64,000 nucleotides of DNA, from NCBI RefSeq assembly GCF_035594765.1, contig NC_085841.1, forward strand, positions 184,063,574 through 184,127,573, given 5' to 3'. Positions 3,638-57,703 of this stretch are shown here, one piece after another; position 1 is the first letter of the stretch, and each line of letters starts with the position of its first letter. The notes below the pieces were generated by a model that was not told the origin of the DNA, made no database searches, and worked only from the letters and a program-made list of their open reading frames with translations. The DNA is from Anolis carolinensis. Taxonomy: Eukaryota. The position numbers were made by a program, and so were the translations under genes.

Positions 3638-3686
3638 CATTTAGAAGCTCTTTGTTTAAATTTGCTCTATCGACAGAGAGAATATA
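3638..3686 (-). CDS. KMO: KMO exon 5 (YILSVDRANLNKELLN)
   Basis: AG/GT boundaries, 49 nt, phase-consistent. Confidence 0.95.
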
Positions 3687-5127: not shown

Positions 5128-6665
5128 GCCCACTTTTTAAAATTAGGAAAATTAAGGACTTCTAGGACCATTAACATAATGTCTACATTGTGCTTTGATT
5201 GTGCTTTTCCTGCATGGCAGGGAGTTGGACTAGATGGCCCATGTGGTCTCTTCCAACTCTATGATTCTAAATCAATAAATTAAAACTTCATTACTAGTAT
5301 TAACAAAATGAATTAATTAGCCTCATTACAATTAATTTAAAGCTCATTAGCAATTCGTGTAATGAGTCCAACACATGGTTTAAATATTCTAAGCTCCATG
5401 GGAGGGAACATTTTGCCAGAATTATGCAGACATCTTTAGTTCATACACTGAAAGCTGCTTCCCAGAATTACATCTCTATTTCCTAAAATCCTATCACATT
5501 TAGGTTTCACCAAGAAACACACGTCCACATGGGTCCAAAGCAGGTTTGATTCCTGCTCTCTTTCAGCCCCAGTGGGAAAGAGGGTTGACTCTGTCCCTAC
5601 AGAGTTCCTTTGCATTCTTTTACTCTCTACCATACAAAAGAGGTTTTTAAACCCCTTCTTTGGGGAAAATTAAAGTGGTGTCTTTGGGGGACATTTGCGC
5701 AAAATTTGCTGTCCATTTCAGACTTTGGGGCGGGGGGGTTGAAAGGGGGTTGTGTCAGAAGTGACTTGAGAAACTACAAGTCGCTTCTGGTGTGAGAGAA
5801 CTGGCAGTCTGCAAGGATGTTGCCCAGGGGACACCTGATGTTTTTTTTAAAAAGAATATATGTTGACTGTGATGTTTGTGATTAACCACACGGAGTGGCT
5901 ACACAAGAATCAACTGCAGTAAAGGAAGTATAAAGGAAAATTTCTAAACCTCGTTTGTACAGAAAAGATTATTTGAAACTATATATATTATTGTCATGCC
6001 ACAAGGAGGCAAAACACTACCTGCTGCCCTGTCTCTTTAAGATTCTAAAGGGGCGGAGCTTAGCCTTGGCTCCTGCCAGCCTGAAATGGCAGTTATTTTT
6101 TGTCAGTTAGAATTTGTCAGTTGGTGAGGCACTGGAAGGAAGTGTAGGGAGTAAAAGGATCACAGAAATTCACGTCACGTCGGAGCTGTACCCAAATTAG
6201 ATATAAAGCCATACACTACAGCAATAGAGAAAGTTATAACAACATTGTATTAATCACATCAAAGCTACAAAGAATCCAGTCATGACAAGACTTCATACTG
6301 TGTGGCAATATATATCCAGAACTGCATAGACTTAAAGATTTCTTTCCTCACAAGAGACTTCATAGTGGCAATAAGAGGAAAAGAGATCCATTTTGTCTAC
6401 CAATAAAATATTTTGTTTTACATAACACAGTGTCCAATCTGTCCTTCGTGCTATGGTAACTCTTGGAAGGGCTTGGTTATACCTCTGGCTTCCTGGTAAA
6501 ACTGAATTACTATGTCACAATAGGATGCATGTCTAAAAGGTGTGTCATCAACATGAAAAGTTTGGAAAGCTTTGCTTTAAAGTATGAGCTAAATTCCAGA
6601 GTAGATTCACAGTTCCATTGAAAAAGAAGCCACTTGATGCCCTTGCTCCTTATGACTCTAAGCAA

Positions 6666-10419: not shown

Positions 10420-12075
10420 TCCCAACAAAGGATTCCCCCAGGCAGGGAGCAGCCAAGCAATTGAAACATTTATACCTGCCTCCAACAGACAAGAGTTCTT
10501 TCTTTCTCCCACCCTGGACTTTCCGCAGATATATAAACCCCACTTGATTAGTTTCCAACCTCTAAGGATGCCTGCCATAGATGCAGGCAAAATGTCAGGA
10601 GAGAATGCTTCTGGAACATGGCCATACAGCCCAGAAAGCTCACAGCAACCCACTTGTCTTTACTGTATTACACAAATGTAATGTGCACCTCAATTTTGGA
10701 ATAGTCATTTAGGCAAAAAAGGTGTGGCTGAGATTGATGTAAATATGGTAATTTTAGCCTTCTTACTCAGATAGAAGCTTCAATAGGGCTACAGTAACTA
10801 GGGTTTGGTATTTTAGATAATATACTCAGCATGATAACTATGGTACTTGTCCTCTGCTGAGCATGAGAATGATGAGCAGACCTTCTTTTCAATCTCTGAC
10901 AACTCTGATGGCAAAGCTGGGGTGATTTACTTGAAGTGTGGGCGAAACGTCAGTATTTTAAAAACTCTAAAATCAGGACAGTAAATAAAGAACACCACTC
11001 AGAAAACAAAGGAATTCCAGACAGGAAACAATCAGGGCCAGCTAACACCTCCCAACAAAAGATTACTCCAGGCAGAAAGCAGCCAGGCTTTGAAGCTGCA
11101 AGACTATTTAATGCTAATCAAGGTACCTCAGACAAGAGTTCTTTTTCCAACCCTGAACATTCCACAGATATATAAACCCCATTTGCCTAGTTTCCAAGAG
11201 ACCTCACAACAACTGAGAGAAAAAGGAGGGAGGGAGGGAGGGAGGGAGGGAGGGAGGGAGAAGAGGGGGATCCTCAATCAGGGCAAGCTAACACCTCCCA
11301 ACAAAGGATTACCCCAGGCAAAAAGCAGCCAGGCTTTGAAGCTGCAAGGATATTTAATGCTAATAACGGTGGCCATTTGCAACATTCACACGTGCCTCAG
11401 ACAAGAGTTCTTTTCCCCACCCTGAACATTCCACACATATATAAACCCCACTTGCTTTGTTTCCAACAGACCTCGCAACTACTGAGGGTGCCTGCCATAG
11501 ATGCAGGCGAAACGTCAGAAGAGAATGCTTCTGGAATATAGCTATAAACTCAGCAGAGAGACTGGGAAAACATAGANNNNNNNNNNNNNNNNNNNNNNNN
11601 NNNNNNNNNNNNNNNNNNNNNNNNNNNNNNNNNNNNNNNNNNNNNNNNNNNNNNNNNNNNNNNNNNNNNNNNNNNNNNNNNNNNNNNNNNNNNNNNNNNN
11701 NNNNNNNNNNNNNNNNNNNNNNNNCAGAAAGGCAGAGGAGGGAGAAGAAGGAGAGAGAGAGGGAGGGAAGAAGAGGGAGGGCGCCAGGGGATCCTCAATC
11801 AGGGCAAGCTAACACCTACCAACAAAGGATTACCCCAGGCAAAAAGCAGCCAGGCTTTGAAGCTGCAAGGATATTTAATGCTAATAACGGTGGCCATTTG
11901 CAACATTCACACGTGCCTCAGACAAGAGTTCTTTTCCCCACCCTGAACATTCCACGATATATAAACCCCACTTGCTTTGTTTCCAACAGACCTTGCAACC
12001 ACTGAGAGTGCCTGCCATAAATGCAGGCAAAACTTCAGGAGAGAATGCTTTTGGAACATGGCCAGACAGCCCATG
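10420..12075 (+). mobile_element. Cluster of tandem Penelope 3'/pLTR fragments (about 10420-10652, 10936-11215, 11270-11560, 11790-12075)
   Basis: Repeated ccaacaaaggatt...gacaagagttct...gcctgccatagatgcaggc block with degenerate hammerhead cores. Confidence 0.8.
11577..11724. other. Assembly gap (148 N)
   Basis: Run of N. Confidence 1.
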
Positions 12076-26420: not shown

Positions 26421-26684
26421 AAATAGTTGGCATATGAAACCTGATGAATCAAATTCTGCTGCCAAACATAGGTCTAGACCTGAATTTCCAACTTCTCTGT
26501 TACATCAGCTAACATCTGAAGTCCTATTAGACCAGTGGTTCTCAACCTGGAGTCCCCAGAAGTTTTTGATCTACAACTCCCAGAAATCCCAGCCAGTTTA
26601 CCAGCTGTTAGGATTTCTGGGAGTTGAAGGCCAAAACATCTGGGAACCCCAGGTTGAGAACCACTGTATTAGAAACACATTTAC

Positions 26685-26824
26685 CGGCTGCCCAGGTTGA
26701 AGTACAGGACCTCCATGCCCATTAGCTGGTGAATACACAGGTGGAGGTAGGGATTTCAGCATCATATTCTGCATAATGATCTGGTGCATCTGTGCATTTT
26801 GCATTAGCATCATCTCCACCATAT
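26685..26824 (-). CDS. C21orf58: C21orf58-like exon 6 (DMVEMMLMQNAQMHQIIMQNMMLKSLPP...PGQP)
   Basis: DUF4587 core EDMVE.ML.QNAQMHQ; AG/GT; 140 nt. Confidence 0.93.
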
Positions 26825-28969
26825 CTGGAAAAGCATGAAAGACAATATCATGAGGCCATTTCTTATTGTCTGCTGTTGATATTACAGTGGAATGCAAGAG
26901 AAAACAGCAGCCTCTAAAGCACAGACATGCTAGCCTGGCACCTCTGACCATTCCCAGTTCTGCCCATGATGGTAGTGTACCATGCAGTGGTATCCCTAGG
27001 TGGTGCAGTTTAAGTATGTGGACACTATCAGGGAGGGACACTCAAATGACTGTCTCTCCCAGAGAGGGTGCTCTCACAGGCTCTCCACATGCTCCAAGTG
27101 GCAAAAGCAATGAATGAAACCGACTCCCTCTCCTCTCCTTTCCCCCTGCAATCCTTGCTCCTCTCAGCCACAGTCTTATTTCCTCCCATAGTCCATGGTG
27201 TTGAATCAGAAATTGGCCCAAAACCACAGCATTTTTCAAATCATAGCCTCTGTGGTGGGCTGCCTGCTGCTGGAACAATGGTTGGTGGACAAAGTGACAT
27301 ATGTCCAGGATAACCATTTTGTCTTTTCTTCTGCTTCCATGGTTACAAGCCAGTCTGTGGTGGAGCTGCTCTGGAAGAAAGAAGATAGTAGTCCACCATC
27401 TCAGTTTGGGGCAGTGTGGGCTTCCAGCTGCCACTGGCGCCCTGCCCTGCCCTGCATAACACCAACCAGATGGCACCACCAACTGGCATCATCAACAGTT
27501 TCCTGCTGCGTGTGAGCACTAGTCAAGATGGACAAACAGCAGTCTCACTGATGACCGCCATTTCTTGTCTCATCACTGGGAGATGACAAAAGCATTCCTC
27601 TCCACACCCACATGTCAATGCATATATCCCACATTGATAGAGCACAGGACCCACTTAGGGCTGAAGCAGGATCTACACTGCCATATAATATAGATTATCA
27701 GAGCAGATAATCCACATTATCTGCTTTGAACTGGATTATATGTGTCTACACTGCCATATAATCCAGTTCAAAGTAGATAATTTAGAATTTATATGGTGGT
27801 ATGGATCCAGTCTGAGAGATTTATGTGTCCTCTATCCCAAAAGTTACTGGTTTTTAGCTCAATGTTGGAGTTAAAAAAAAATTAACAGTAAAAGGTTTCT
27901 GAACAATTGAACTCTGTTAGCAACAGCGTGCAGTGTTTACAGTGAACTGTGCAGAAGATGCTTCAGCTGCACTTCATAAAAAGGAAAATCATTCAGTTGA
28001 GCAACCCTTGCAAATGCTGGTTTATTATCTGCTTTTAATTGGATTATATGCGTCTACACTGCTATATAATCCAGTTCAAAGAAGATTATCTGGATTTTAT
28101 ATGGCAGTGTAGAAGGGGCTTTAAGCTGCCCTGAGTCCCCATGGGAAGATGGGGCGGGGAAGAAATAAGGTTTTGTTGTTGTTTTATACTAATTTTATAA
28201 ACCTATATACCTGGAGTCTCATAAAGATTTATCTGGCAGAAAGGGGCCGTGAATGGGAAAAGTTTAAGAGCCCCGTTTTAGGCTATAAAAGATAGACAAT
28301 ATATACAATATAGTTTGGTAAATGTCTGATGGCACAGATGTGGTAAATGGAAATAAATTTATCAAAGTCCCTGTGCACTCTGGATTGATTTGCCATGATG
28401 TATTGTGGACAACAAGTCAATTTGAGGTGTGGACAATAGTATCTGATTATATATTTGCATGTGGCAAAATTAGCCATCTATTATATGGCAAAAACATTTG
28501 CAAAGAAGTTTAATTTTTCTCCATATTCTTACCAACAGCTAAACTAGATGTGATGGGGATACACCAAATGTCCTTTGACCCTTTCTCCTCCTCAAGGAAC
28601 ACAATCAGTCGAGTGTTTTCGGCTTTCTCTCCACTCCAAAATACTTTGAGATTTTCTTCTCACATAGCTAGGAAAGATGATGGTGGAAATAGTTTCTGAT
28701 TATGCCTGATCAGATTCAGGCACAGAAACCCATAACTTTATTACCTTTTTTAAAACCTAAAAAAAGGTTCACACCTCTCCTATATTTAATCTAGTTTGAC
28801 CATAAAATAGGTTGTTTAATTGGGACCTGAGGTGGTTAGCTGCCAAAGCCATTGTGTTCATCATATTCTGAAGTGACTGTCAGAACAGACCCTGGATTTC
28901 CTTGTCATGCCCCTTTTCACAGCAGCATATTGCAAATATGGCGGCAGGCCCATCTTGGGCTTTCTCTCA

Positions 28970-39637: not shown

Positions 39638-41172
39638 TGTCACAAACTCCCAAGGCAATAGACTGATCAAACAACAAATAAAATTACATGTGATATGTGC
39701 AGTCTCTTCTTTTCTGCAGCATTTTTATCAAAAATTTCCATTGAGTTTCTCTCCGTCAGACTATTATTGCAAGGAAAGGGGGAAACATCTCTTCCTCAGT
39801 CCCTCTCCTTCTCATGCTTGTTGGCTTGTACACTCAGTATGGTTACTAAGATGTTGCTTCAACAACACTGAGACTTTCCTAAGGGCTTTCTCATTGCAAA
39901 ATCACTACGCCCAGCCCTGTGTGCTGCTCCCAGGCTCAATAACTGTAATAAGATCAGCTAGCATGGTTACTATGTTTGTACTTTCTACAGTCTAAACAAA
40001 ACTCCAAGTAAAGACACAAACCTGAATCATATAATTTGCTAGGTGGAACTATTCCAGATTTTGTAAGATCTGGTGAAGTATTCCTTTAAAAGAATTTCCC
40101 AAACCATGCTTTAAATAACTTACTCCAGAAAATTCAAAGAGAAATAAGACAAAACAATTGAAATTATAAGAAGAGAGAAGTGTTGTAAGAGCTTGTGTTT
40201 TCAAGTACAGTAGAGTCTCACTTATCCAACGTTCTGGATTATCCAACACATTTTTGTAGTCAATGCTTTCAATGCATTGTGATATTTTGGTGCTAAATTC
40301 GTAAATACAGTAATTACTACATAGCATTAATGTGTCATGAACTACTTTTTCTGCCAAATTTGTTGTATAACATGATGTTTTGGTGCTTAATTTGTAAAAT
40401 CATAACATATTTTGATGTTTATTAGGCTTTTCCTTAATCTCTCCTTAGTATCCAACATATTCGCTTATCCAACGTTCTGCCGGCCCATTTATGTTTGATA
40501 AGTGAGACTCTACTGTATGTCTTCCTGCACATGAAGTTCATTTACATTACAATTTCTGCATATATGTAGATTTAAAATATATTTTTATAAATTAAACACA
40601 GCAAATCAGTACACAAGTCTCCAGAAAATTGTCTAAAGGTATCTTCTTAGACCGGTAAAATATTTTGATTTTCTGACAATATAATAGGAAGATTTATAGA
40701 ACTCCATACTGTTTAGAGTATAAACTTTACCTAGCATTGTCACATTTGGAGCTCAGATATGCCTTCAGGCTAAATAATATATACAGTAGAGTCTCGCTTA
40801 TCCAACATAAATGGTCCAGCAGAATGTTGGATAAGTGAAAATGTTGGATAATAATGAGGGATTAAGGAAAAGCCTATTAAACATCAAATTACATTATGAT
40901 TTTACAAATTAAGCACCAAAATATAATGATTTACAACAAATTGACAGAAAAAGCAGGTCAATATACAGTAACGTTATGTAATAATTACTGTATTTACGAA
41001 ATTAGCACCAAAACATCGCAATGTATTGAAAACATTGACTACAAAAACATTGACTACTAAAAGGCAGACTGCGTTAGATAAAACAGAACGTTGGATAAGT
41101 GAAGGTTGGATAAGCGAGACTCTACATCATCATACATTGGATATAAAATGCAAATTTCACACTAGCATAGAA

Positions 41173-44100
41173 TCTATATCTATATCTATATCTATCTATA
41201 TCTACATCTCTATCTCTATCTCTATCTCTATCTCTATCTCTATCTATATCTATATCTATATCAATATATATAATAAAAGTCAGTGTTTGTATGTATCAGC
41301 GTTTTGATTGGCCTGGCGGAATATGGGTCAGCTTTCTGATTGGCCGGCCGGAATATGGCCCAGCTTTCTGATTGGCCTCCACTTTCACAGGCCACTGGGA
41401 CCCCTGAGGCAAAAACTACTACCAACTGGCTTTGTTCAGCCTACTTCTCTCCTCAGAACGACGCTAGCTTTGGTACAGTTAACAGCCTTCGGCCTACACT
41501 TTTGTAATCAAAAAAACCACTGCCACCACCAGGAAGGCCGGACCTGGACCAAACTTGACACACATAATCCCTACGACCCATGAACCCACTGACAATGGAT
41601 CTGGACCACATAGACCCAACATGCCCAACTGTGCATATTGATAATTAAAAACTTTGGGTGCTAGGAATTACAGTTCACTCACACATTCACAGCATTCTGA
41701 ATCCAACTAACGATGGAAAATAATTATGTTTTAATGCTTCCTTTTAAACAATGGTTGCGGGTATGTTTATGAAAACTTCTACCCCCTCACCTCATCCCCC
41801 TTCAGTGCTTCTACTGACATGTCTGGGCCTTTGCAGGCTGCTAGGCCCTGCTAGGCCGCAAAGGAGGGGGCCATCTTGCCTCCTCACGATTGCTCCAAAG
41901 ATGGCAGCTTCTGCCTGGGCCATTGCCAGAACTGTCCTTCTACAAGGTAAGACAGTACTTTCCACAACAGACTGAAGAGAAAATTCACTATCTTTTTAAT
42001 CTTTGCTGTCATTATGAACACTTTTATCCCCCCCCCCCCACCTTACCCACCCACCACTGGGCGCTTTGGCCCCTCTGCTGACATGTTTAAGGCCTTCCAG
42101 GCTGGCCCCATGCTACTAGGCCCAAAAGGGGATGCCGTTTTGCCTCAGCTTTCAACTTCTTTGTAAGGCCCTACTTTCTTCAAAAGACAGCAGAGAACAT
42201 CGTTATTATCTTTTTAATGATGCCTTTTCATGCTTATGAACACTTCTAGCCCCCAAAGCCCCAATCCAAGCCGCCTTGGATCATTTTGCTAACACGTTTC
42301 AGGCCTTGCAGGCTGGCTCCATTCTGCTAGGCCGCAAAAGAGGGGGCCATCTTCCCTGTTCCACATGGTTCCAAACAGAGCAGCTTTTGCCTGTGTCTTT
42401 TGGATACAGCACTCTCCTTCAACAAGGTAAGGCGGCAGTACGTAAATAGGTTGATCTTGGGCTGATGGGAGTAGCTCCACATCAAGTAGGAAATAAGGTA
42501 CCACTTATAAAGTGGGGAGGCAAATTTAACTAATTTACAATGTTGGAATGAGGAAGTGCCGTCAGAGTGGATGATGAAGCAGCTGTTCTCCCCTGTGGCC
42601 AGAATCGAACATCCCCTCAGGAGAAGGTTAAATTGCCTCTGCGTCTATCTCTGTCTCGGTTCTGTGTGTATACGGGCATTGAATGTTTGCTCTATATGTG
42701 TATAATGTGATCTGTTTATATATATATAAATGGTTCTGTTTATATGGTTATGCATTTCCTAATAACTTTATTCTTAAATCCAAAATCCAACAATGGCTAT
42801 TTCTAATATATATATATCCTTACCAAATGAACCCAGGCAACATCAGGTACTTAGGCAACATTATTTGTTTATTTACGGTATTTATATTCCGCCCTTTTCA
42901 CCCCGAAGGGGATTCAGGGCGGATCACATTATATACATATAGGGCTAACATTCAATGCCCATATACACATAGAACCGAGAGATCATCCACTGTGATGGCA
43001 CTTCCTCATTCCAACGTCATAAATTAGTTAAATTTGCCTCCCCACTTTATAAGTGGTACCTTATTTCCTACTTGATAGTGTTGTCGACCGCGTTTCGGGG
43101 GATCGGGCCCTTAAGGAGAGACCCGACCCGGTCCTGAGGGAACGGACCTTGGCGAAGCCAAAAGGAGAATATAAGCCGCAATACAACCTGAAGCCGAAAT
43201 GAAGAAGGTCCGCCAAAGTTGAAGGAAAATTCCGCCAAGGAGTCTTTATTGAGCGATTCAGCTGAAAAGGACTCTAGTAGTGATCATTCAGTCTACTAGG
43301 GTACCATATAATCAAAATAAAGCCATATTTATACAAAGTTTCAGTCTGACAGCCCTTTGAATTTCCCGCCCCGCTCCCCCGCCCATCTGATCGCTGATAG
43401 GCTAGAAGGTTGAACGAGGCGGGCTTTCGTTTCCCGCCTTGCTCTGTTGGCCCAATAGGGAGCTGCTTTTTGTCCCCACTCGAGCAAATCAGGAAGGAGA
43501 AGGCGGGAGTTATTGAAACAATGAAGTGACAGGGCAGGAAAGATCGGATTAATTCCTGCCAGACCAATTTCTAAAGGAATTAATGGCAGCAATCAAAGAA
43601 TGTCCGGGTTTCTGTCACGTATACAGATTTTAGATATGCCTTGGGGTGTCAGGGGTGGAAGTGGTGATGGGTGGTGATGAGCCATAATTGACAGGCTCCA
43701 CAGGGCGCCTTCCTGAGGTGTCCTGGAATTTCCTTAGGATGAGATATGACAATGTTTGCCTTGGGGGCGAATCACCTTTAGGACAACACTCCGAATTCGG
43801 CGACTCAAGCCTTATATTGTCCATGCAATCTGAATTAGATTGGGTTAAGCGGTGGCAGATTATCCTTTTGTTTTTGGGAAGGGAAGCCTGGGTTATAGGA
43901 AATGAGATAAGTTCTGGGGTTCAGGTTGAGTTCAAAATATTCCCTATTTGATTTGATGACTTGACAATTATATGAAATAAAATGAAAAATAAAATAAAGT
44001 TGGAATATAAACCGTGCTGGGAAAAATACATATTTTCCGGGGATCCCAAAGAGTACAAATACATATAGGCAGATAGATAGGTTTCATGGAAATATGGGAG

Positions 44101-46033
44101 AATCTATAAAGGTGGGTTACATTGCATAAAGGGGAATCAGGAATGATATAAACAATTGAAAACATTTGATAAGAACGAGGTTCACAACATCTGGGGAACC
44201 CAATATGGAAGTTCATAAAAAGTGGAGTTTTAGGAGCATGATTTTACAATTCATGAAATTAGCCCAACAATTAGAAATTCATACAACAGTGATTCATGAG
44301 GGTGTCCAGGTACATAGAATATGAAAATTCACGGATACATTGGGAAAAGAGTTCATCTGTGGTGGAAGGAATTCATAGAAATAGCATGGGGGAGAGGTAC
44401 ATGTGGGTTGCAGTCTTTGGAAGTATAGGATTTCATAAGTTCAGGAGTAGGTCTGGGGAAGAGTGTTCTTCTCATTCATAAAATTATGAAGGTGTAAATG
44501 AAACGTGGAGGGCGCCCGACCAGGCACCCTCCTGGCAGCTGTAGAGAGGGTGAAGGTCCTTGGAGAACTATGTCTCCCCAGCGGGAGAGCGATCCCCCAT
44601 CCACAGTTTACAGAAAGGGGCCAGTGATCTCTTAAAAAAAACCATCCCGCGGGTCGCGGGGAGAGGAAAGTCCGGGATAAGGCTGGAAGAGAGCAGTCTG
44701 GCTTGAAAAGAGCAATCGGTTCCGTTTGACAATCAGCTGATGAGGTGCCGAGAACTGGACCGATTTTGGTTCCGCTGGTGGTCCTTGAGTCAGGAGCCTT
44801 AGGAAGGGTTAGGACTAAAAGAGGAGTGTGCCAGGGGTAATTTTGATAAAGATATGAGCCAATTTGTATCGCCCGCCGTATTAATCTATGGCGGAGGAGC
44901 CTCAGCCAGAGTTAAAGGGACGGACGGGTTAGATAGAGAGAGAGAGATTACGTGCAAAAGAAGGAGTCAGGGAAAGACACAAAATAACCAGGTAGAGAGT
45001 GTTACTATTAAAAATGAATGCTACTTTTATTGGGGGATTTGTTACATAATTCAGGGAAAGGGAAAGTGAAGGAAAAAAAAAGATCTTTTAATAATAGTCT
45101 GCTGCGGTCCCGCTCCGTTCCTTTGGTGATGGATCTGCGGAACTCTCCGCTGCGGGTTCAAATCAATTTGAAAGCTGGCGCCTCGGTCATCAATAGATGC
45201 AACTATCTTTCGGGTTGCTAGGTCAGCAACGAGCAGGGGCTATTTTTTTTAATTGACAGTACTCACCCCGCCACGGGATGGCCTCCAACACATGACCTCA
45301 TGGTCAGAGTGATTTATTGCAGCAGGCTGCTCACCAGCCTGCGCCACAGGATGTTATGGATGTTGTCCATCTACAACCTTATGCATTTTATTAATGGGAT
45401 AATTCATTTTAAAAAAATTAAAATCCCCTTTCAAATAACCCGGGCGTCGCCAGGTACCCAACCAGGTATATAGTAATAAAAGTCAGTGTTTGTGGGTATG
45501 TATGTTTGTATGTAAGTATGTATGTATGTGGCGATGTATACTTCCGCCCTGGGCTCTGACTACCACAGACCACTGCAACCCCCCACAAAAGATGCATCTG
45601 GAGCTGTTTGGACAAGGATGGACCACGGACGAAGGAATTTGCAGTACCATCACCTGCTTTACAGACCACACAACCCCCACCAATGACAGACTAGGACCAA
45701 GCTTGAAACACAAACTCCCTATCACTTTCAACCCTGGAGAATTTGGTGAAGAATGGAACATGGATGATAGGATCTGAAGTATCTTCACCCACATCCAGAG
45801 ACTATTCCTAACCCCCTCAGTCATGTATCTGTACCAAAGATGGCACAGACCCCCATGACTCTTCTTATATACTGCTGAGGTTTTTGGGAGGATTTCCAGT
45901 ACCTTCAGTCCCATCCAGAAACTACTGCAAACCCCATCGGCCATAGATCTGCATCAATGGGCCCATTCATAATATCGAAAACAACTCAATGCCCGCTACT
46001 AATAACCCGGGCACCGCCGGGGCCCCAAGCTAA
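41173..46033 (+). mobile_element. Non-autonomous internal-deletion derivative of the same Helitron family
   Basis: A|TC start with an expanded TATC microsatellite; 5' and 3' segments homologous to 46034-47000 and 55335-56228; same terminal hairpin, ending CTAA; no RepHel. Confidence 0.88.
43079..45192 (-). mobile_element. Second copy of the same solo LTR, inverted, inserted into a SINE within Helitron copy 1
   Basis: TG...CA termini, ATAG TSD, reverse-complement homology to 52772-54834 along its length. Confidence 0.87.
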
Positions 46034-46628
46034 TCTATATATATAATAAAAGTGAATTTTTGTATGTGTGTATGTATCAGCGTTTTGATTGGCCTGGCGG
46101 AATATGTGCTCGCGTTTTGATTGGCCTGGCGGAATATGGGCCAGCTTTCTGATTGGCCGGCCGGAATATGGGCCAGCTTTCTGATTGGCCTCCACTTTCA
46201 CAGGCCACTGGGACCCCTGAGGCAAAAACTACTACCAAGCAGGCTTCGTTCGGCCTACTCTCTCTCCTCAGAACGATGCTAGTTTTGGTACAGTTAACAT
46301 CCTTCGGCCTACACTTTTGTAATCAAAAACACCACTGGCACCACCAGGAAGGCTGAAACTGGACCAAACTTGACACACATCACCCCTAGGACCCAGGAAC
46401 CAACTGACAACGGATCTGTACCAAATACACCCAACATGGCCAACTGTACATACTGATAATAAAACACTTTACATTTACATTACTATATCTACTTTCCACA
46501 ACAGACTGAAGAGATAAAAAGACTATCTTTTTAATGATGCCTTTTCATGCTTATGAACATTTCTAGCCCACAGACCCCCCCCCCCCCCAATTACTGCCCT
46601 CTTCAACCTTTCTGCTGACATATTTTAG

Positions 46629-48043
46629 GCCTTGCAGGCTGGCTCCTCCCTCCTAGGCCCCAGAGGACGACGCCATCTTCCCTGTTATACATTCTTCCAC
46701 AGAAGGCAGCTTCTGACAGGGTCATTGATACAGAACTGTCCTTCTACAAGGTAAGGACCTACTTTTTTCAAATGACAGCACACAACATTGTTATTATCTT
46801 TTTAATGATGCCTTTTCATGCTTATGAACACTTCTAGCCCCCAAAGCCCCCATCCTGGCCTCCTTTGATCCTTCTGCCACATACTTCCAGGCCATGCAGG
46901 CTGGCTTTCTCCTCCTAGGCCCCAAAGAGGAGGCCATCTTCCCTGTTCAACGTTGTTCTACAGAAGCCAGCTTTTGCCTGGGTCTTTTGGATGCAGCACT
47001 TTCCTTCTACAAGGTAAGACAGTACTTTTCACAACAGACCGAAGAGAACATTGTTATTATCTTTTTAATTATACCTTTTCATGCTTATGAACACTTCAGG
47101 TCTTACAAGCTATCCCAAGACTGTTAGGTGGCACACCAGCCCACCCTCTCCCCAGTTCAATGTTTTTTCAAATAAGGTGGCTTCTTCCAGGATAATTTGG
47201 ACGTAGCACTGTACCTACACAAGGCAAGACCCTATTTTATTCAAGACAAAGGCTAACATCATTATTATCTTTTTAATGTTGCCTTCTTAACAACAAGATG
47301 GGGTTTGACAGAGTACTTCTCCCCATTTGACTTCTTCTCATTCCCCCCTCCATATTATGCAGTATATATATATGTGTGTATGTGTGTGTGTGTGTCTGTG
47401 TGTGTGTTTATGAAGAGTTCTAACCACCATCCACCTCCTTTTACCCTTCTGCTGAACAATTTCAGGTCTTGCAAGCTATCCCGAGACTGTTAGGCCACAC
47501 AACAGCCCGCCGTCTTCCCAGTTCAACATTGTTCCAAATAAGACAACTTCTACCAGAATAATTTGAAAACAGCATTGTCCCTACACAAGGTAAGGTCCTA
47601 TTTTATTCTAAAGATAAAAGGGAAAATAATTATTATCTTTTTAATGTTTCCTTTTAAACAATAAGATGGGGTTTGACAGACTATTCCTCCCACTTTGAAT
47701 CCTTTCCTTTTCTTTTCAGTACAAATATCAAATGGAAGGTATGTCTGTGACAGAAAAGAAAAAGAAAGAATATGAATGAATATACACACAAATATGGAAA
47801 TGTCAAAGATACGGTGTCTGTGTATGCGTGTGTGTGTGTGTATGCAAGGCACACTGTGTGTATTTATGAAAAGCTCTACCCCCCACGCCTCCATTGACCC
47901 TTCCGCTTAATCCTTTCAGACCTTGCAAGCTGTCTTGGGCCAGTTATGCTGCACAACTGTTCATCCTCCTCCTGATTCAACATAGTTCCAAAAAGGGCAA
48001 TTTTATCCAGGATCATTTGGAAACAGCATTGTCCCTCACCAAG
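46629..48043 (+). repeat. Array of five homologous 122-124-nt exon-like cassettes upstream of RepHel
   Basis: Each unit runs ttYag|(G/A)YCWT...CAAG|gtaag (one GC donor); related copies at about 41828-41946 and 42303-42426. Confidence 0.75.
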
Positions 48044-48348
48044 GTAAGGTACTGCTTTATTCAAAAGACAATAGAGACCATAATTATTAGGGATATTTTC
48101 AGTTGTGTGCATTGTTATAAGTTATTCCCTGAAGCCCAAATCCAAAAAATCTTACTCCTTTCTGTTTTACACTGCTAAATAATAGTGTTTCTTTTATCAG
48201 GAGTGGTACCTTCAAAATGTCTCAAAAAAGGAAATCTACCATAGGAAAAATCCCACCAAAAGCAAAAAAGGGAAAATTCCACCAAGCAAATGAGTCAACT
48301 GACTGTCGACTTGATAATAACCAGGAAACAGCTAATGCATCAAGGATT

Positions 48349-48900
48349 GCAGAGACTCCAGAACAGCGTCAGGCCAAGCTTCAACAAAAGAGAGAAAAGG
48401 CCAGAGCATCCAGAGCAGCACAGACTCCAGAACAGCGTCAGGCCAGACTTGCAGCAATGAAAGAAAGAGCCTCTATGTTAAGAGGAGCAGAGACTCCAGA
48501 ACAGCGTCAGGCCAGGCTCCAACAAAAACGAGAGAAGGCCAGGGCATCCACAGCAGCAGAGACTCCAGAACAGTGTCAGGCCAGACTTGGGGTAATGAAA
48601 GAAAGAGCCTCTACATCAAGAGGAGCAGAGACTCCAGAACAGTGTCAGGCCAGGCTTGCAGTAATGAAAGAAAGACCCTCTACGTCAAGAGCAGCAGAGA
48701 CTCCAGAACAGCGTCAGGCCAGACTTCGAGTAAAGCAAGAAAAAGCCTCTACGTCAAGAGCAGCAGAGACTCCAGAACAGCGTCAGGTCAGACTTGGAGC
48801 AATGCAAGAAAGAGCCTCTATATCAAGAGCAACAGAGACTCCAGAACAGCATAATGCCCGACTTCAAGAAATCAGGGATAAAGTCACTACAACAAGGAAA
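48349..48900 (+). repeat. Coding tandem repeat, 8 x 69 nt (23 aa, AETPEQRQARL...), STPR-like
   Basis: (G/C)AGACTCCAGAACAG recurs every 69 nt from 48352 to 48835. Confidence 0.9.
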
Positions 48901-51900
48901 GGAAACCATTCAAATTTGTTGCTTGAAGGTTTTCACTATAATCCTCATAAGGACTATGATCAATATCCAAATGTTATTATTGGACAAATGAATCAAATAT
49001 GTAGGTATTGTCATGCCAAGAAATTTAAAATGGAGCCACCGGGGTTGTGCTGTAAGAGTGGAAAAGTTGCACTGCCACCTTTAGAACAACCACCAGATGA
49101 ACTTCTTTCTTATATGTCTGGAAGTACTTCAGAATCAAAACATTTCTTACAGAACATAAGAAGATACAATTCATGCTTTCAAATGACATCGTTTGGTACC
49201 ACCTCTGTTGTTGAAGAAAGGAGCTTCCCAACAACTTTCAGAGTGCAAGGTCAAGTCTACCACACGGCAGGATCTATGATGCCTTTACCCGATCAAAGCC
49301 CCAAGTTTTTACAAATTTTCTTTATGGGGGATGACCAACTAGAAACAGATCAACGATGCCATTACATTCCTGATGTCAGACGTGATATTGTCTTGATCCT
49401 ACAGCAGATGTTTCATCAACACAACCACATAATTAACACATTCAAAACAGCCCTAGAACGTATGCCAACAGATGAATACAGAGTAGTTATTAGAGCTGAT
49501 AAAAAGCCAGTGGGAGAACATGAACGTCGCTTCAATGCTCCTCAAACAAACGAAGTTGCAATCGTCATATCAGGTGATGAATTTGATCAACGTGACATCA
49601 TCATCCAAAGGCGCAGTAATTCACTACAGCGCATACCAGAAACACATCGATGGTATGATGCACTTCAATACCCACTGATATTTTGGCAGGGTGAAGATGG
49701 TTATCACTTCAACATTAAGCTAATCAACCCAACTTCAGGCATACCAACTAACAAAAAAGTCTCAGCAATGGACTACTATGCATACAGAATAATGATTAGA
49801 AGTCATGTTCCTAATCATATTTTAAATTGTCAGCAACTATTTCATCAATTTATTGTTGATATGTATGCAAAGATTGAAACTGAGCGTCTTCTCTTCATAT
49901 GCCAAAATCAAAAGAAACTTCGAGTGGACAAATACATCCACTTAAGGGATACTGTCTCCAATGATAGAAGTGTTGATAACATTGGGCAAATGGTCATTCT
50001 ACTTGCTACATTCACAGGAAGCCCAAGACACATGCACGAATATGCTCAAGATGGCATGACATATGTGAGATCTTATGAACGCCCTGACTTATTTATTACT
50101 TTCACGTGTAATCCCTCTTGGTCAGACATAAAAGAAGAACTTTTATTCAGACAGACACCCAGCGATTGTCATGATTTAATAGCAAGAGTGTTCAAACAAA
50201 AACAAATGAAGTTAATCAATGTAATAAATAAGAGCCATGTATTTGGAGAAACACGGTGCTGTCTGTACTCAATCGAATGGCAGAAACGAGGACTTCCACA
50301 TCCCCATAATCTAATTTGTCTAAAAGAAAAAATTAATCCAACTGACATAGACAATGTTATATCTGCAGAATTCCCAAATCCATCTGAAGACCCTAGCCTC
50401 TATTCAGTGGTGACCAAAAATATGATTCATGGTCCATGTGGAAACCTTAATATGAATGCACCGTGTATGAAGGAAGGAAAGTGCAGCAAGAAGTATCCCA
50501 GACAATTGGTTACAGACACACAAACAGGACACGACGGTTATCTTCTCTATAGAAGACGAGCAACATCAGATGGTGGCTTCACGGCAAAACTCAAGATTAG
50601 AGGCAAGACAGAAGTAGAAGTGGACAACAGATGGGTTGTTCCATATTCTCCACTCCTTTCTAAAATGTTTCAAGCACATATTAATGTTGAATACTGCAAC
50701 TCAATAAAGTCCATTAAGTACATCTGTAAATATGTGAACAAGGGAAGTGACATGGCTGTTTTTGGACTCACTAATGAAAACAGAAATGATGAAGTCCCTC
50801 AATACCAGCTGGGAAGATATATCAGCAGTAATGAAGCAGTTTGGCGGATTTTCAGCTTTCCGATCAATGAACGCCATCCAACCATTGTTCACCTTAGTGT
50901 GCATTTAGAGAATGGCCAAAGAGTCTACTTTACAAGAGATAATGCTGAGACAGTTGCTGCCGAACCACCAAATACCACCTTGACAGCATTCTTTCAGTTG
51001 TGTCAACAGGATTTGTTTGCAAGAACACTGCTATATCCTGAAGTTCCAAAATATTACACATGGAACGCATCCAGAAAGGTCTTCTCCAAAAGAAAACAAG
51101 GAATGTCAGTTTCAGGACATGATGCAGTTGCCAGCGAAGCCTTGGGTCGTGTGTACACCGTTCACCCTAACAATGCTGAATGCTTTTTTCTTAGGATATT
51201 ACTTCACACTGTTCGAGGGCCAATGTCTTTCGCATTTCTAAAAACTGTCAATGGAGAGGTGTGTAATACTTTCAGAGAGGCATGCCAAAAGCTTGGTCTA
51301 TTAGAGGATGATCAACACTAGAACTTTACTTTATCAGAAGCAGCATTACAATCTTCACCAGCTCAAATACGGAACCTTTTTGCCATCATCCTGACAACCT
51401 GCTATCCATCAAACCCTAATGGACTATGGGAGAAACACCGAGAAAGCATGGGTGAAGACATACTTGCAAAACTACAAAGAGACAATCCCACCATGCACTT
51501 AACATTTTCTCCAGACATTTTTAATGAAGCACTTATACTGTTAGAAAACAGATGTCTGGCCATCAGCAACAAAACATTATAACAGTTAGGTGTACAGCCT
51601 CCAGAACGAAATAACCATGATGTCTTCAACAACGAACTTCTGAGAGAAAAGAATTACAATACTGAAGAACTACTAATATTTGTACAATCAAGAAAGCCTC
51701 TATTAAATCATGATCAAAGAAAAGTATATGACACCATAATGGATCACATCAGGAATCAAAAAGGTGGCATACTTTTCCTCGACGCACCTGGAGGAACCGG
51801 AAAAACATTTTTAATTAATTTAGTACTTGCTGAAATTCGTGGAAGTAGGGATGTGGCACTCGCACTCGCTTCCTCTGGGATTGCATCAACACTGATGGAT

Positions 51901-52771
51901 GGAGGACGAAGAGCACACGCAGCATTAAAATTGCCACTGAACAACGCCAATGAACAGCACCCAACCTGTAACATCAGCAAAACATCTGGGCAGGCACAAG
52001 TGCTAAAAATCTGCAAAGTCATAGTGTGGGATGAATGTACTATGGCACACAAGAAATCACTTGAAGCCCTTGACAGAACTCTACAAGATCTAAGAGGAAA
52101 CAATGAACTGATGGGAGGAGCTCTGGTCCTTTTAGCTGGTGACTTCCCGTCATTCCAAAGTCGACGCCAGTAGATGAGCTTAATGCTTGCCTCAAGGCTT
52201 CCGCTCTTTGGAGACATGTGAAGAAAATGACATTGCAAACAAATCTGAGGGTCCAACTTCAAGGAGATGCAAATGCTCAACCTTTTGCAGAGAAGCTCCT
52301 TCAAATTGGTGAAGGTACTTTTCCCACTGATTTGACCTTAGGTGAAATCCACTTTCCAAATGACTTCTGTACGATTGTGACGTCAGTTGGAGAACTTATA
52401 GATAAGGTTTATCCAAACATTTCAGAAAATTTCAAACAACACTCCTGGTTGTGTGAAAGAGCCATCCTCGCGGCTAAGAACGATGTAGTGCATGAAATCA
52501 ACAAGCACATTCAAGACATGATTCCAGGCTCCGTAACAGAATACAAATCCATCGATACAGTAGTGGATGCCGATGAAGCTGTGAATTTTCCAACCGAGTT
52601 CCTCAACTCCCTTAATCCACCTGGGATGCCATCTCACCGCCTGCCACCTAAAGTAGGATCGCCCATCATGCTGCTTCGAAACCTCGAACCACCAAGGTTA
52701 TGCAATGGCACCCGGCTGTGCATCAAAACACTGCTGCCCAATGTCATAGAAGCCACAATACTGACTGGGAA

Positions 52772-54834
52772 TGATGACCGAGGCGCCAGCTTTCAAATTG
52801 ATTTGAACCCGCAGCGGAGAGTTCCGCAGATCCATCACCAAAGGAACGGAGCGGGACCGCAGCAGACTATTGTTAAAAGATCTTTTTTTCTTCACTTTCC
52901 CCTTCCCTGAACTATGTAACAAATCCCCCAATAAAAGTAGCATTCATTTTTAACAGTAACACTCTCTACCTGGTTATGTTGTGTCTTTCCCTGACTCCTT
53001 CTTTTGCACGCAATCTCTCTCTCTCTCTCTATCTAACACGTCCGTCCTTTTAACTCTGGCTGAGGCTCCTCCGCCATAGATTAATACGGCGGGCGATACA
53101 AATTGGCTCATATCTTTACCAAAATTACCCCTAGCACACTCCTCTTTTAGTCCTAACCCTTCCTAAGGCTCCTGACTCAAGGACCACCAGCGGAACCAAA
53201 ATCGGTCCAGTTCTCGGCACCTCATCAGCTGACTGTCAAACGGAACCGACTGCTCTTTTCAAGCCGGACTGCTCTCTTCCAGCCTTATCCCGGACTTTCC
53301 TCTCCCCGCGACCCGCGGGATGGTTTTTCAGAGATCACTGGTCCCTTTCTGCGAACTGTGGATGGGGGATCGCTCTCCCGCTGGGGAGACATAGTTCTCC
53401 AAGGACCTTCACCCTCTCTACAGCTGCCAGGAGGGTGCCTGGACGGGCGCCCTCCACGTTTCATTCATACCTTCATAATTTTATGAATGAGAGGGACACT
53501 CTTCCCAGACCTACCCCATAACTTATGAAATCCTATATTTCCAAAGACTGCAACCCACATGTACCTCTTCCCCATGCTATTTCTATGAATTCCTTCCACC
53601 ACAGATGAACTCTTTTCCCAATGTATCCGTGAATTTTCATATTCTATGTACCTGGACACCCTCATGAATCACTGTTGTATGAATTTCTAATCGTTGGGCT
53701 AACTTCATGAATTGTGAAATCATGCTGCTAAAACTCCACTTTTATGAATTTCCATATTGGGTTCCCCAGATGTTGTGAACCTCGTTCTTATCAAATGTTT
53801 TCAATTGTTTATATCATTCATGATTCCCCTTTATGCAATGTAACCCACCTTTATGGATTCTCCCTTATTTCCTTGAAATCTATCTATCTGCCTATATGTA
53901 TTTGTACTCTTTGGGATCCCCGGAAAATATGTATTTTTCCCAGCACGGTTTATATTCCAACTTTATTTTATTTTTCATTTTATTTCATATAATTGTCAAA
54001 TCATGAAATCAAATAGGAAATATTTTGGACTCAACCTGAACCCCAGATCCTATGACCCAGGCTTCCCTTCCCAAAAACAAAAGGATAATCCGCCACCGCT
54101 TAACCCAATCAAATTCAGATTGCATGGACAATACAGGGTTTGAGTCGCCGAATTCGGAGTATTGACCTAAAGGTGATTCGCCCCCAAGGCAAACATTGTC
54201 ATATCTCCTCCAAAAGAAAATCCAGGACACCTCAGGAAGGCGCCCTGTAGAGCTTGTCAATTATGGCCCATCACCACCCCAAGGCATATCTGAAATCTGT
54301 ATACGTGACAGGAACTCTTGATTGCTGTCATTAATCCCTTTAGAAATCGGCCGGGCAGGAATTAATCCGATCTTTCCTGCTCAGTCACTTCATTGTTTCA
54401 GTAACTCCCGCCTTCTCCTCCCTGATTGGCTCGAGTGGGGACAAAAAGCAGCTCCCTATTGGGCCAACAGAGCAAGGCGGGAAACGAAAGCCCGCCTCGT
54501 TCAACCTTCTAGCCTACCAGCGATCAGATGGGCGGGGGAGTGGGGCGGGAAATTCAAAGGGCTGTCAGACTGAAACTTTGTATAAATATGGCTTTATTTT
54601 GGTTATGTGGTACCCTAGTAGACTGAATGATCACTACTAGAGTCCTTTTCAGTTGAATCGCTCAATAAAGACTCCTTGGCGGATTTTCCTTCAACTTTGG
54701 CGGACCTTCTTCATTTCGGCTTCAGGTTGTATTGCGGCTCATATTTTCCTATTGGCTCCGCCAAGGTCCGTTCTCTCAGGACCGGGTCGGGTCTCTCCTT
54801 AAGGGCCCGATCCCCTAAAACGCGGTCGACAACA
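52772..54834 (+). mobile_element. Solo LTR (~2.06 kb; ERV1/Gypsy-type 4-bp TSD) inserted in the Helitron helicase
   Basis: TG...CA termini, GGAA TSD; removal restores [16 protein letters not shown]; CCAAT, GC box, TATAAA (~54581) and AATAAA (~54664) near the 3' end; no long ORF. Confidence 0.85.
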
Positions 54835-57703
54835 GGAAGGGGCAGGGTGAGGATGTGTTCATTCCTCGCATTCCCCTGATCCCATCAGATTTGCCCTTTC
54901 GTTTTAAGAGACTGCAGTTCCCCGTGAGGCTGGCATTCGGGATCACCATCAACAAGGCACAGGGCCAGTCAATCAAATACTGTGGGATTAACTTGCAGTC
55001 ACCGTGTTTTTCCCATGGACAGTTATATGTGGCATGTTCTAGAGTAGGTTCCTCAAATAATTTGTTTGTTTATGCGCCGGGGGGGGGGGGGGGGAACCAA
55101 AAATGTTGTTTATAAACAGGTTTTACAATGAACTCACTGTTCTGCCATGTTGATGTGTTTAAAAGTTGTATTTTTTCATTCTTCCAGAGGTTCTCAATAA
55201 CAACAGTGAATTTCCATATAAAAGGGAAGATTAAACAATAAAATGTTTTTTACTCCTCACTGATTGACTCATTCCTACAACTGTAAATTGGAAAAAATTC
55301 TACTACATAATATTAGAAAAGGCATTACCGGGTAAGTACATAGATAGGTTGATCTTGGGTTGATGGAAGTAACACCACATCAGCTATACAAATGTATAAA
55401 TAGTTCTGTTTATATGGTTATGCATTTTCTAATATGTTTATTCTTAAAATCCAAAATCCAACAATGACTATTTCTAATATATATCCTTACCAAATGAACC
55501 CAGGCAATGTCAGGTACTTAGGCAACATGATGTTGTCCATCTACAACCTTATGCATTTTATTAATGGAATAATTCATTTAAAATAAATTAATTCATTTAA
55601 AATAAATTAAAATCCACATTTCAAATAACCCAGGTTCCAAGCAGGTATAGTAATAAAAGTCAGTGTTTGTGTATGTGTGTGTGTGTGTGTGTATGTATGT
55701 ATGCGGCGGTGTATATTTCCACCCTGGGATCTGACTACCACAGACCACTGCAACCCCCCACAAAAGATGCATCTGGAGCAGTTTGGACAAGGATGGACCA
55801 CGGATGAAGGAATTTGCAGTACCATCACCTGCTTTACAGACCACACAACCCCCACCAATGACAGACCAGGACCAAGCCTGGAACACAAACTCCCTATGAC
55901 TTTCAACCCTGGAGTAGTTTAGTGAAGGATGGAACATGGATGATAGGATCTGAAGTACCTTCACCCACATCCAGAGACAATTCCTAACCCCCTCAGTCAT
56001 GTATCTGTACCAAACATGGCACAGACCCCCATGACTCTTCTTATATACTGCTGAGGTTTTTGGGAGGATTGACCACAGACGATGGGATTTCCAGTACCTT
56101 CAGCCCCATCCAGAGATTACTGCAAACCCCATTGACCATAGATCTGCATCAATGGCCCCATTCATAATATCCAAAACAACTCAATGTCCGCTAACAATAA
56201 CCCGGGCACCGCCGGGTCCCCAAGCTAGTATCAAATAAACGAAAGTAAATTTGAACATGACACCTTTCTGCAATTGGTGGTGTTGGAGTGAAATTGTGAA
56301 TTAAAAATAGGTTTCAAATATGGGAAATCATTCAGTCATTAATTTTGGCATTCTTCATTATGGAGAAAAGAAAACCCTTGTAAAATGCTTCTTAAGGGGC
56401 AGTTGCTTTTTCTAAAGTGCAGTGATATGAACAGGAATTTATAACCTTGTGTACTGACATAAAAGCTCTTTTGACTGGCTATGGAAAACAGCACTTCATT
56501 TAGGACAACATTATGAATATTCATCAAGAATGATTTCCAAATAACAAAAAAATCAACATAAAATAAGTCATGATTTTTTTTGTTTTTTATTTTTTTCCCA
56601 ACAGCATATACAATTAAACATTTTGAGAACCATAAAAAGAGGAAATGTTGATGTTGTAGTACAGTTTACACGTAAAATAATTAAGAATGTTGGCATGAAT
56701 ATTTCTAATGAAAACCTTTTACCCATATACGTATGTGTCCTTTCCTAATTAGCTTTGTATTAGGCAGAGAGCAAAATAAGGTATTATTAGAAATTATTTC
56801 GATCTCCTTTGCTCATAAATCTGTGCTTTTTCTAATTGCCTTGACAGATTGAAAAAACAGCTTTCTAATATCTGTGCTTTCAATTTAAAATGGGAACCCT
56901 ATAGGTAATCTAGTCTCACCCTCTTTTTATCAAACAGAAATGTAAAATCACAGCCCTATCACTGGGATTGGGTGCTACTGCGAAGTATACCTTGTTATTT
57001 AGGCTATAAAGTCCTGGCTATTTTAAAAATGTGAACCCACTTTGTACTTTTACTATTTAAAGCTTTTCCTTAGCTTTGAACCAAAGCCCGTTACAGCCAA
57101 CTATTAAATCATTCTAATTTTCTAGTTTTTGTTCAGAATCCTTGCAACTAGATATCTATAATTTGTATTATATAATTTAAAATAATGTTATAGATTTTTG
57201 TTCTACAATGTGACGTTCACATTTGTCTTCAATGACCAGTGATAGCCAAAGAGGAAAGTTGACATCTGAAATTTTACAGTGGTTGCTTCTGCAACCAAAC
57301 CTCAATGGATACTAAGGGCCTGCTCTATCTCCAAATGTCAACTTTCATTTAATTCCACTTTTGTGGAGGAAAAACTGTCTTTTATCATTCCTTTTAGAAG
57401 AATGGACACAACACATGGAGGTGTGTTGTCTTTATATTTTGGAGGTAAAGTCGATTGCCAAAACTTTTCATTGCTGCTATGGTGAAAAGAGAGGCTGAAT
57501 CAATTTTGTTTTATGTTCTTTTGCTACTAGAAACCTCTCATCAGCCTTTGATACCGTCAACCATCAAGGCAACAGACCCCCTCCTTGGCCCACACGTTTT
57601 AAAAATTACTGGATAAGTTGTGAATAAAGTATAGATTTGGGTGATTGTTCTGTTACAGTTCTGTTAGTTGTGGTCTACTTTTAGATAATATCAAGAAAAA
57701 AAC

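Follow-up and report, generated by a model that had tools for sequence, protein, structure and literature searches.

Our data indicate that the region upstream of the RepHel gene of a long Helitron in Anolis carolinensis is best explained as a non-coding, multi-intron 5' leader of the RepHel transcript, a reading that we consider probable, albeit not strongly so. The region lies within a 64,000-nucleotide stretch of genomic DNA, referred to here as the window, and contains five paralogous units of 122-124 nt (U1 to U5) between a CCAAT-repeat region and the RepHel ATG of the Helitron. At least the last two of these cassettes are genuine spliced 5'-UTR exons, the runs that carry their splice joints being probable RNA, while U1 to U3 are leader exons by prediction.

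Architecture of the cassette array and its Helitron

The first-pass annotation of this DNA had described five units of 122, 123, 124, 124, and 124 nt, and all five are found at the positions claimed (Table 1). They are true paralogs, with BLAST identities between cassettes ranging from 66 to 80% (79% for U1-U2, 80% for U3-U4, 74% for U4-U5, and 70% for U1-U4). An nhmmer profile of the cassette recovers every unit at E ≤1e-48, and cassette homology within the 64-kb window is restricted to the array and a neighboring Helitron copy, on the plus strand throughout. The units form two subgroups, one comprising U1 and U2 together with the units of the neighboring copy (N0 to N2) and the other comprising U3, U4, and U5. 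The splice signals attributed to the units are also present: all acceptors consist of a pyrimidine-rich tract ending in (T/C)AG, and the donor reads CAAG/GTAAG in U1, U2, U4, and U5 and CAAG/GCAAG in U3 (a slash marks the exon border). With its GC donor and a rebuilt, weak acceptor, U3 is the weakest candidate exon. The donor 9-mer CAAGGTAAG occurs seven times in the window, compared to 0.61 expected occurrences, and six of the seven lie in cassettes of the two Helitron copies. The final acceptor, ttttatcag, ends its intron at 48200, which is 16 nt upstream of the RepHel ATG at 48217, as had been proposed.

The duplicated unit is a whole module of exon plus intron, with a TRF period of 263 nt over 46489-47097, and the introns downstream of U3 and U4 are 82% alike. 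The leader introns are short (86-330 nt each) and sum to 955 nt. Loose contig ends show that family members mostly run on past 46470 into a segment of the type found in the neighboring copy, with cassette N0. Since the loose ends at 46470 join this N0-bearing segment, the module before U1 was lost from the RepHel copy.

Table 1. Coordinates of features of the two Helitron copies in the window and of candidate leader exons and introns in relatives
Feature	Sequence	Position	Strand	Length	Remarks
Deletion copy (internally deleted, non-autonomous, same family)	Window	41173..46033	+		Starts A/TC at 41172/41173, ends CTAA at 46033
Cassette N0 (deletion copy)	Window	41823-41946	+		Acceptor AG lost
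Cassette N1 (deletion copy)	Window	42093-42166	+		Truncated
Cassette N2 (deletion copy)	Window	42303-42426	+		Donor at 42426
Helitron 5' terminus (TC...)	Window	46034..46075	+		Adjoins 3' CTAA of upstream copy
Tandem repeat	Window	46078..46191	+	32 nt x3.6	ATTGG per unit (CCAAT on opposite strand)
Cassette U1	Window	46629..46750	+	122 nt	Predicted leader exon; unspliced contig 46608-46772 in run X19
Cassette U2	Window	46891..47013	+	123 nt	Predicted leader exon; two ATGs
Cassette U3	Window	47100..47223	+	124 nt	Predicted leader exon; GC donor, non-homologous short acceptor region
Cassette U4	Window	47466..47589	+	124 nt	Confirmed leader exon; donor used (joint 47589/47920)
Intron U4-U5	Window	47590..47919	+	330 nt	GT..AG; removal confirmed
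Cassette U5	Window	47920..48043	+	124 nt	Confirmed leader exon; acceptor and donor both used
uORF in U5	Window	47946..47975	+	Nine codons	ATG 47946, stop 47973-47975
Last leader intron	Window	48044..48200	+	157 nt	GT..AG; removal confirmed; retained form also present
ORF exon	Window	48201..51321	+		16 nt of 5' UTR, then RepHel from ATG 48217 to premature stop
Rest of RepHel (PIF1 helicase)	Window	51322..52771	+		Stop ~51580, frameshift ~52150
LTR-like repeat in helicase domain	Window	52772..54834	+	2.06 kb (2,063 nt)	TG..CA, GGAA on both sides
C-terminal end of RepHel coding region	Window	54835..55133	+		Collinear with relatives L001 and L002
3' hairpin and CTAG terminus	Window	56201..56228	+		Hairpin 56201-56217, CTAG 56225-56228, then T
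Predicted cassettes	L001 (tailed frog)	3815-3875, 4289-4349, 5100-5151, 5235-5345			Last acceptor 5855
Candidate intron	L006	2881-2974			Predicted; ends 26 nt before ATG
Candidate intron	L007	1517-1573			Predicted; ends 46 nt before ATG
Candidate intron	L008	791-852			Predicted; ends 12 nt before ATG

The array belongs to an element with a 5' TC, a 3' CTRR, a pre-terminal hairpin, insertion between A and T, and no TIRs, all of which are characteristic of Helitrons. Over 42 nt, its 5' terminus has 86% identity with the corresponding end of a pseudoscorpion relative (L002 5563-5603), and its 3' hairpin was re-found by a bacterial promoter and terminator scan, a tool not suited to a vertebrate. 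The tandem CCAAT repeats that had been noted upstream of the cassettes are there as well, and this 32-nt repeat is a putative NF-Y-type promoter region. The ORF exon encodes STPR repeats and Helitron_like_N (PF14214, E=4.8e-51; PF21107, E=2.3e-40), and further Pfam matches of RepHel were found to PF05970 (E=4.2e-38) and PF21530 (E=8.7e-16). At the domain level, the element thus encodes the HUH Rep and PIF1-type helicase of a RepHel protein, with the gene broken in the window copy. The RepHel coding region, approximately 4.85 kb with its stops and frameshift included, aligns collinearly with relatives that have a single exon, and the ORF is A-rich on its sense strand (34% A versus 24% T). Excluding the LTR-like insertion, the element is approximately 8.1 kb long. 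The earlier view of this element as autonomous did not hold: since two stops (51319 and ~51580), a frameshift (~52150), and the 2.06-kb LTR-like insertion break RepHel, the element is not autonomous in the sense of being intact.

Directly upstream lies an internally deleted copy of the same family. The 3' region is common to both copies, the 3' end of the deletion copy at 46006-46033 matching that of the RepHel element, and the 32-nt ATTGG/CCAAT repeat is also present in the deletion copy at 41296-41378. One related cassette had been reported from this copy (N2), and we found it together with two others, N0 and the truncated N1. Directly after the N2 donor, the deletion copy ceases to be homologous to the RepHel leader. 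In the host context, fumarase motifs were looked for and not found. The window has a run of N at 11577-11724.

Splicing, conservation, and coding content of the leader

We compared public assemblies of three runs (X17, X18, and X19, from three studies), whose RNA nature is only guessed, with a DNA run (X3). Contigs of both X18 and X19, which are probable RNA and come from two different studies, contain the joint between 47589 and 47920, which skips 330 nt, and the joint between 48043 and 48201, which skips 157 nt. Both skipped segments are bounded by GT..AG, and both joints have zero mismatches to the window. The second of these is the junction that the first-pass annotation had set as a test. 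Furthermore, a 397-nt contig of X18 consists of U4, U5, and the ORF exon and is mismatch-free against the window, and the depth of X18 is found on exons only, with zero depth over introns. Neither joint was found in the DNA run X3, though the same places are covered there in unspliced form. The longest sequence common to both sides of either joint is 5-7 nt, which excludes a repeat-induced (de Bruijn) assembly chimera between paralogs. Since both joints are found in probable RNA and are absent from DNA, at least U4 and U5 are real spliced 5'-UTR exons.

Unspliced forms were observed as well. X19 also carries a contig (48015-48228) that retains the last leader intron, and X17, likewise probable RNA, contains unspliced pieces only. 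Among the joints listed for X17 to X19, none involves U1 to U3. The earlier proposal of a multi-exon spliced 5' UTR is thus borne out for U4 and U5 in probable RNA, but no joint accompanies it for U1 to U3. Counting against our explanation are the unspliced U1 contig, the exclusively unspliced pieces of X17, the loss of the module before U1 together with the failure to see a good first-exon donor, and, in the deletion copy, the lost acceptor of N0 and the truncation of N1.

We next consider how the splice sites have fared among the paralogs. Conservation was measured on an alignment of U1 to U5, repeated with N0 and N2 added, with 13 splice columns per cassette. The mean pairwise identity is 0.86 in splice columns versus 0.62 in the remaining columns (column permutation, p ~5e-4), and splice columns also exceed the exon interior alone (p ~3e-3). 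Among the five units, mean pairwise identity is 0.89 for the donor (-3..+6), 0.80 for the acceptor (-3..+1), 0.67 for the exon interior, 0.65 for the downstream intron flank, and 0.45 for the upstream intron. The claim that splice signals outlast both cassette interiors and spacers therefore stands for the splice columns, but the downstream intron flank has diverged no further than the exon interior. The donor 9-mer CAAGGTAAG is the most conserved window of nine columns in the cassette alignment and is perfect in six of eight units despite 20-30% divergence, with a rough P of ~5e-4 that assumes approximately 18% change per site since the common ancestor. This conservation among only five to eight related paralogs is compatible with purifying selection on splicing. 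An intronic TTATGAA is also invariant across units, showing that conserved blocks also persist through chance or constraints of another kind. Given that the RepHel copy is a dead gene, present-day selection on that copy is unlikely.

The leader does not appear to be a structured RNA. The consensus structure of seven cassettes is weak (-7.5 kcal/mol) with an unfavorable covariation term, and we dropped the idea of a structured RNA repeat on these grounds. Over 41000-48400, an Rfam search yielded no match close to the gathering scores, and the leader introns thus contain no snoRNA or miRNA.

The cassette exons are non-coding. In an analysis carried out exon by exon, the paralogs were found to be separated by frameshifts and stops, with U3 and U4 having a TAA at the same place. 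It had been suggested that the 123-nt unit alone forms an open, frame-preserving cassette; U2 is indeed the only unit whose length is divisible by 3, but stop-free frames are also found in U1 (two) and U5 (one). The RepHel frame contains a stop within U5 and then no ATG until 48217, and since U5 has this stop, an in-frame extension of RepHel into the leader is impossible. The predicted start of the protein, M-S-Q-K-R-K...I-G-K, matches M-P-P-K-K...I-G-K of its relatives, and the ATG has an A at -3. Peptides of the cassettes had no Pfam match at E up to 10. The U2 peptide, searched against 1.84 billion proteins, gave four marginal matches only, all to large repetitive proteins; these matches, two of which are bacterial He_PIG Ig-repeat proteins, were judged to be chance and not relatives. 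The confirmed part of the leader contains a sole uORF, located in U5, whose stop is 84 nt before the main ATG in the spliced form.

Origin and possible roles of the leader

We asked what the leaders of related elements look like. RepHel is 71-75% identical to full-length relatives from a pseudoscorpion, a tailed frog, spiders, a scorpion, hookworms, and rotifers, and further relatives in the same range were found in many insects and a bracovirus. This patchy distribution is like that of horizontally transferred Helitrons (PMC2997563). The pseudoscorpion copy (L002) has the 5' terminus and the ORF in common with the anole element, and its leader is approximately 380 nt long and contains no cassettes. 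It carries a single ATTGG box approximately 120 nt upstream of the ATG, and a pyrimidine-rich AG precedes the ATG by exactly 16 nt, as in the window. In the scorpion copy and other copies of arthropod type, sequence prediction yields candidate GT..AG introns of 57-94 nt just before the ATG. Overall, leaders in the arthropod relatives are short and contain no more than one candidate small intron, which ends 12-46 nt before the ATG. Because of these short leaders, we infer that an older, simpler leader gave rise to the array through tandem duplication of an exon-intron module. The array thus most probably reflects tandem expansion, specific to one lineage, of a leader intron module that was already present in the ancestor.

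With less certainty, the splice sites may have been kept since leader introns would aid expression of an otherwise intronless, A-rich RepHel coding region. Splicing in general promotes export and translation, and the leader introns could act by this route, i.e., through splicing-dependent export and translation. They could also, or instead, protect the element from HUSH-type silencing, which in vertebrates is directed at long intronless A-rich units; as a counterpoint, a small artificial intron gave no protection from HUSH (PMC8770142). The uORF in U5, together with optional weak exons such as U3, may modulate transposase output. Deletion derivatives retaining the promoter, leader exons, and donor would, as a by-product, be potential exon traps. 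These functions, namely intron-dependent expression, uORF control, silencing escape, and exon trapping, are ones that we infer.

The same module could have been amplified by slippage or unequal recombination as a neutral by-product, in which case intact sites would be spliced with no effect on the transposase or on fitness. We regard this as possible but doubtful. It would fit the duplication of whole modules including introns, the conservation of intron flanks at the level of exon interiors, the degenerate signals of U3, and the fact that the transcribed copy is itself defective. The two Helitron copies are also unlike in cassette number and integrity, given that a module was deleted after 46470, N0 is without its AG, and N1 is truncated. 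However, after 20-30% divergence, retention is significantly higher at the donor 9-mer and acceptor than in other columns, and a predicted multi-cassette leader recurs in the frog relative, where G has otherwise been almost erased.

This frog copy (L001) has only 3.8% G across the 2.5 kb upstream of its ATG. Its leader contains paralogous exon-like cassettes with predicted borders tttcacag/G...CACAAG/gtaa, and it holds 10 YAGG motifs versus 0.7 expected and six AGGT[AC]A motifs versus 0.07 expected. The G content of the predicted exons is 10.4% versus 2.4% elsewhere in the leader. No significant homology between frog and anole cassettes was found when the cassette profile was run against the relatives with nhmmer, and a leader of this type is absent from three more frog copies (L003 to L005). 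We hypothesized that a minimal leader with at most one small intron, as in arthropods, has repeatedly expanded into long multi-intron leaders after entry into vertebrates, through tandem duplication of exon-intron modules, as an adaptation to intron-dependent expression or HUSH-type surveillance. Under this hypothesis, a horizontally spreading clade would have produced both the anole array and the tailed-frog array, the latter known from sequence prediction, and the strand-specific loss of G in the frog, in sparing predicted exons and splice borders, would mark these as selected. We consider such repeated adaptive expansion unlikely.

The cassettes might alternatively be host exons, from a gene or a lncRNA, that were captured and then duplicated in the manner of HelibatN3 and NUBPL, with exon trapping as their main effect in place of RepHel control. 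Consistent with capture, the pseudoscorpion relative lacks the leader despite sharing the 5' terminus and ORF, and homology of the deletion copy to the leader stops right after the donor, leaving a layout of promoter, exons, and donor. Moreover, the DNA run X3 contains U2-like units together with intron 1 in very many copies, and the DNA depth of these units and of the 5' part of the leader is orders of magnitude above that of the ORF. This layout and the very high DNA depth make exon trapping by non-autonomous copies plausible. Capture as the source of the array nevertheless seems quite improbable: Pfam and protein-library searches, which address the protein level only, gave no parental gene, and the array sits exactly between the conserved promoter motif of the family and the conserved pre-ATG acceptor position and is spliced to the RepHel exon.

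Finally, it is very improbable that the spliced transcripts start elsewhere than at the element's own promoter, through read-through or splicing from the head-to-tail upstream copy (N2 donor at 42426) or from an unannotated host transcript, with the cassettes being trapped exons: the spliced contigs begin at U4 and so cannot show the RNA start, no good first-exon donor is visible by sequence inspection between the CCAAT repeats and U1 (46192-46628), and a copy with promoter and donor lies 3.6 kb upstream on the same strand, but no plus-strand host gene was detected around the elements, where the KMO exons and a DUF4587 ORF, the only match among other long ORFs, are on the minus strand, and the position of the final acceptor is conserved with relatives that have no such context.

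Comparison with known systems

Vertebrate Helitrons are usually drawn with a single uninterrupted RepHel ORF. Among other DNA transposons, the maize elements En/Spm and Ac produce transposase mRNAs with long 5' UTRs and introns, and splicing affects their products. To our knowledge, no tandem array of homologous cassette exons makes up the leader of En/Spm or Ac, and neither element is a Helitron.

Introns within the Hel domains have been reported for plant and Caenorhabditis elegans Helitrons (cited in PMC8788227). As in the anole element, their transposase transcript needs splicing, but the anole introns all lie in a non-coding leader of repeated exons. A long Helitron of Anolis carolinensis, Helitron-1_AC, has been described as 8,771 bp in length with fewer than five copies (Novick et al., PMC3014272). 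Compared by description only, it resembles the element studied here in being a long RepHel-encoding anole Helitron with internally deleted derivatives and a size close to ~8.1 kb. That survey of anole DNA transposons makes no mention of Helitron introns or exons (PMC3014272). HUSH silences long intronless A-rich transcription units, and added introns relieve the repression, findings obtained in human cells with L1s, retroviruses, and transgenes (PMC8770142). The RepHel unit is like these targets in being long, intronless in its coding region, and A-rich on the sense strand, but Helitrons and lizards are not among the systems in which HUSH targets are known.

The deletion copy resembles HelibatN3, a bat Helitron with a captured NUBPL promoter, first exon, and splice donor; non-autonomous copies of HelibatN3 have been amplified and are able to splice to acceptors located downstream (PMC4778049; PMC2997563). 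The deletion copy has the same layout of promoter, short exon, and donor. The anole array differs from HelibatN3 in that it consists of tandem paralogous cassettes with both acceptors and donors, located upstream of the element's own RepHel and spliced to it. A text search of the literature found no description of a Helitron leader built from tandem cassette exons. Introns in Hel domains are already known, as are Helitrons equipped with a promoter, a first exon, and a donor, and what appears to be new, as far as the literature searched here suggests, is the tandem cassette-exon leader.

Our data describe a Helitron message that is spliced in its leader, with joints from probable RNA, and whose leader is built from duplicated cassette exons. 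This provides a system for asking whether a horizontally transferred DNA transposon must gain introns for expression or for avoidance of silencing in vertebrates. Furthermore, deletion derivatives with the same leader, which are far deeper in genomic DNA, are a possible source of portable promoter-exon-donor modules and could generate chimeric transcripts with host genes, like HelibatN3 in bats.

Genomic setting and structure of the two Helitron copies

We found recognizable host sequence on the minus strand around the Helitrons (see table). Since the coding exons of KMO lie on this strand, the Helitrons are located upstream of KMO and outside the gene.

The two same-family elements, an internally deleted copy and the downstream copy that encodes RepHel, are arranged head to tail; the 3' CTAA of the former is immediately followed by the 5' TC of the latter (46030-46035). 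The 5' TCTATA... end of the deletion copy has expanded into an (ATCTAT)n microsatellite of approximately 100 nt (41172-41272). Each copy contains an LTR-like repeat; the two repeats are 93% alike and in opposite orientations, with TG..CA ends and an internal AATAAA and TATA-like motif. In addition, the deletion copy carries a 596-nt foldback (42481-43076) directly 3' of the donor of its leader cassette N2, with outer arms of 95 nt (95% complementary) and inner arms of 59 nt (92% complementary).

Feature coordinates in the window and in related elements (Y, pyrimidine)
Feature	Sequence	Position	Strand	Remark
KMO coding exons	window	1142, 1402, 8372	-	conserved motifs
DUF4587 ORF	window	26598-27041	-	
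LTR-like repeat, ~2.06 kb	window	43079-45192	-	in deletion copy
LTR-like repeat, ~2.06 kb	window	52772-54834	+	in helicase domain of RepHel copy; GGAA on either side
Candidate short GT..AG intron	L006	2881-2974		before RepHel ATG
Candidate short GT..AG intron	L007	1517-1573		before RepHel ATG
Candidate short GT..AG intron	L008	791-852		before RepHel ATG
Y-rich AG	L002 (pseudoscorpion)	5916-5923		16 nt before ATG

Leader introns and base composition

On its sense strand, the leader of the RepHel copy (46200-48216) is poor in G (16.5%, compared with 25.4% C). An invariant TTATGAA is present in the introns preceding the five paralogous leader units U1-U5, at approximately 46553-46559, 46824-46830, 47087-47093, 47409-47415, and 47863-47869, respectively. 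This motif lies 53-70 nt 5' of the acceptor for U1, U2, U4, and U5 and 12 nt 5' of it for U3. The confirmed U4-U5 intron also contains a 22-nt inverted repeat (47699-47771; 86% complementary, 29-nt loop), for which an Rfam search returned miRNA-like matches below threshold only.

Leaders and RepHel N-termini of related Helitrons

Depletion of G is found in a relative from the tailed frog Ascaphus truei (L001; CM079538.1), the leader of which (3500-6002) contains only 3.8% G on its sense strand. G is retained at paralogous exon-like cassettes and at their AG/G and AG/GT borders. Judged from its sequence, the frog leader looks like a second, predicted multi-exon leader that is apparently unrelated to that of the anole element.

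The N-terminus of the anole RepHel contains 7.5 tandem repeats of 69 nt (23 aa; 48349-48864) that match the Pfam STPRs domain (PF21107, E=2.3e-40), and this domain is also found in several arthropod relatives. In the arthropod-type relatives (L002 and L006-L008), the sequence ending 12-46 nt 5' of the RepHel ATG is a candidate short intron or, failing that, a Y-rich AG. The pseudoscorpion copy resembles the anole element in this respect, as the distance from AG to ATG is 16 nt in both.
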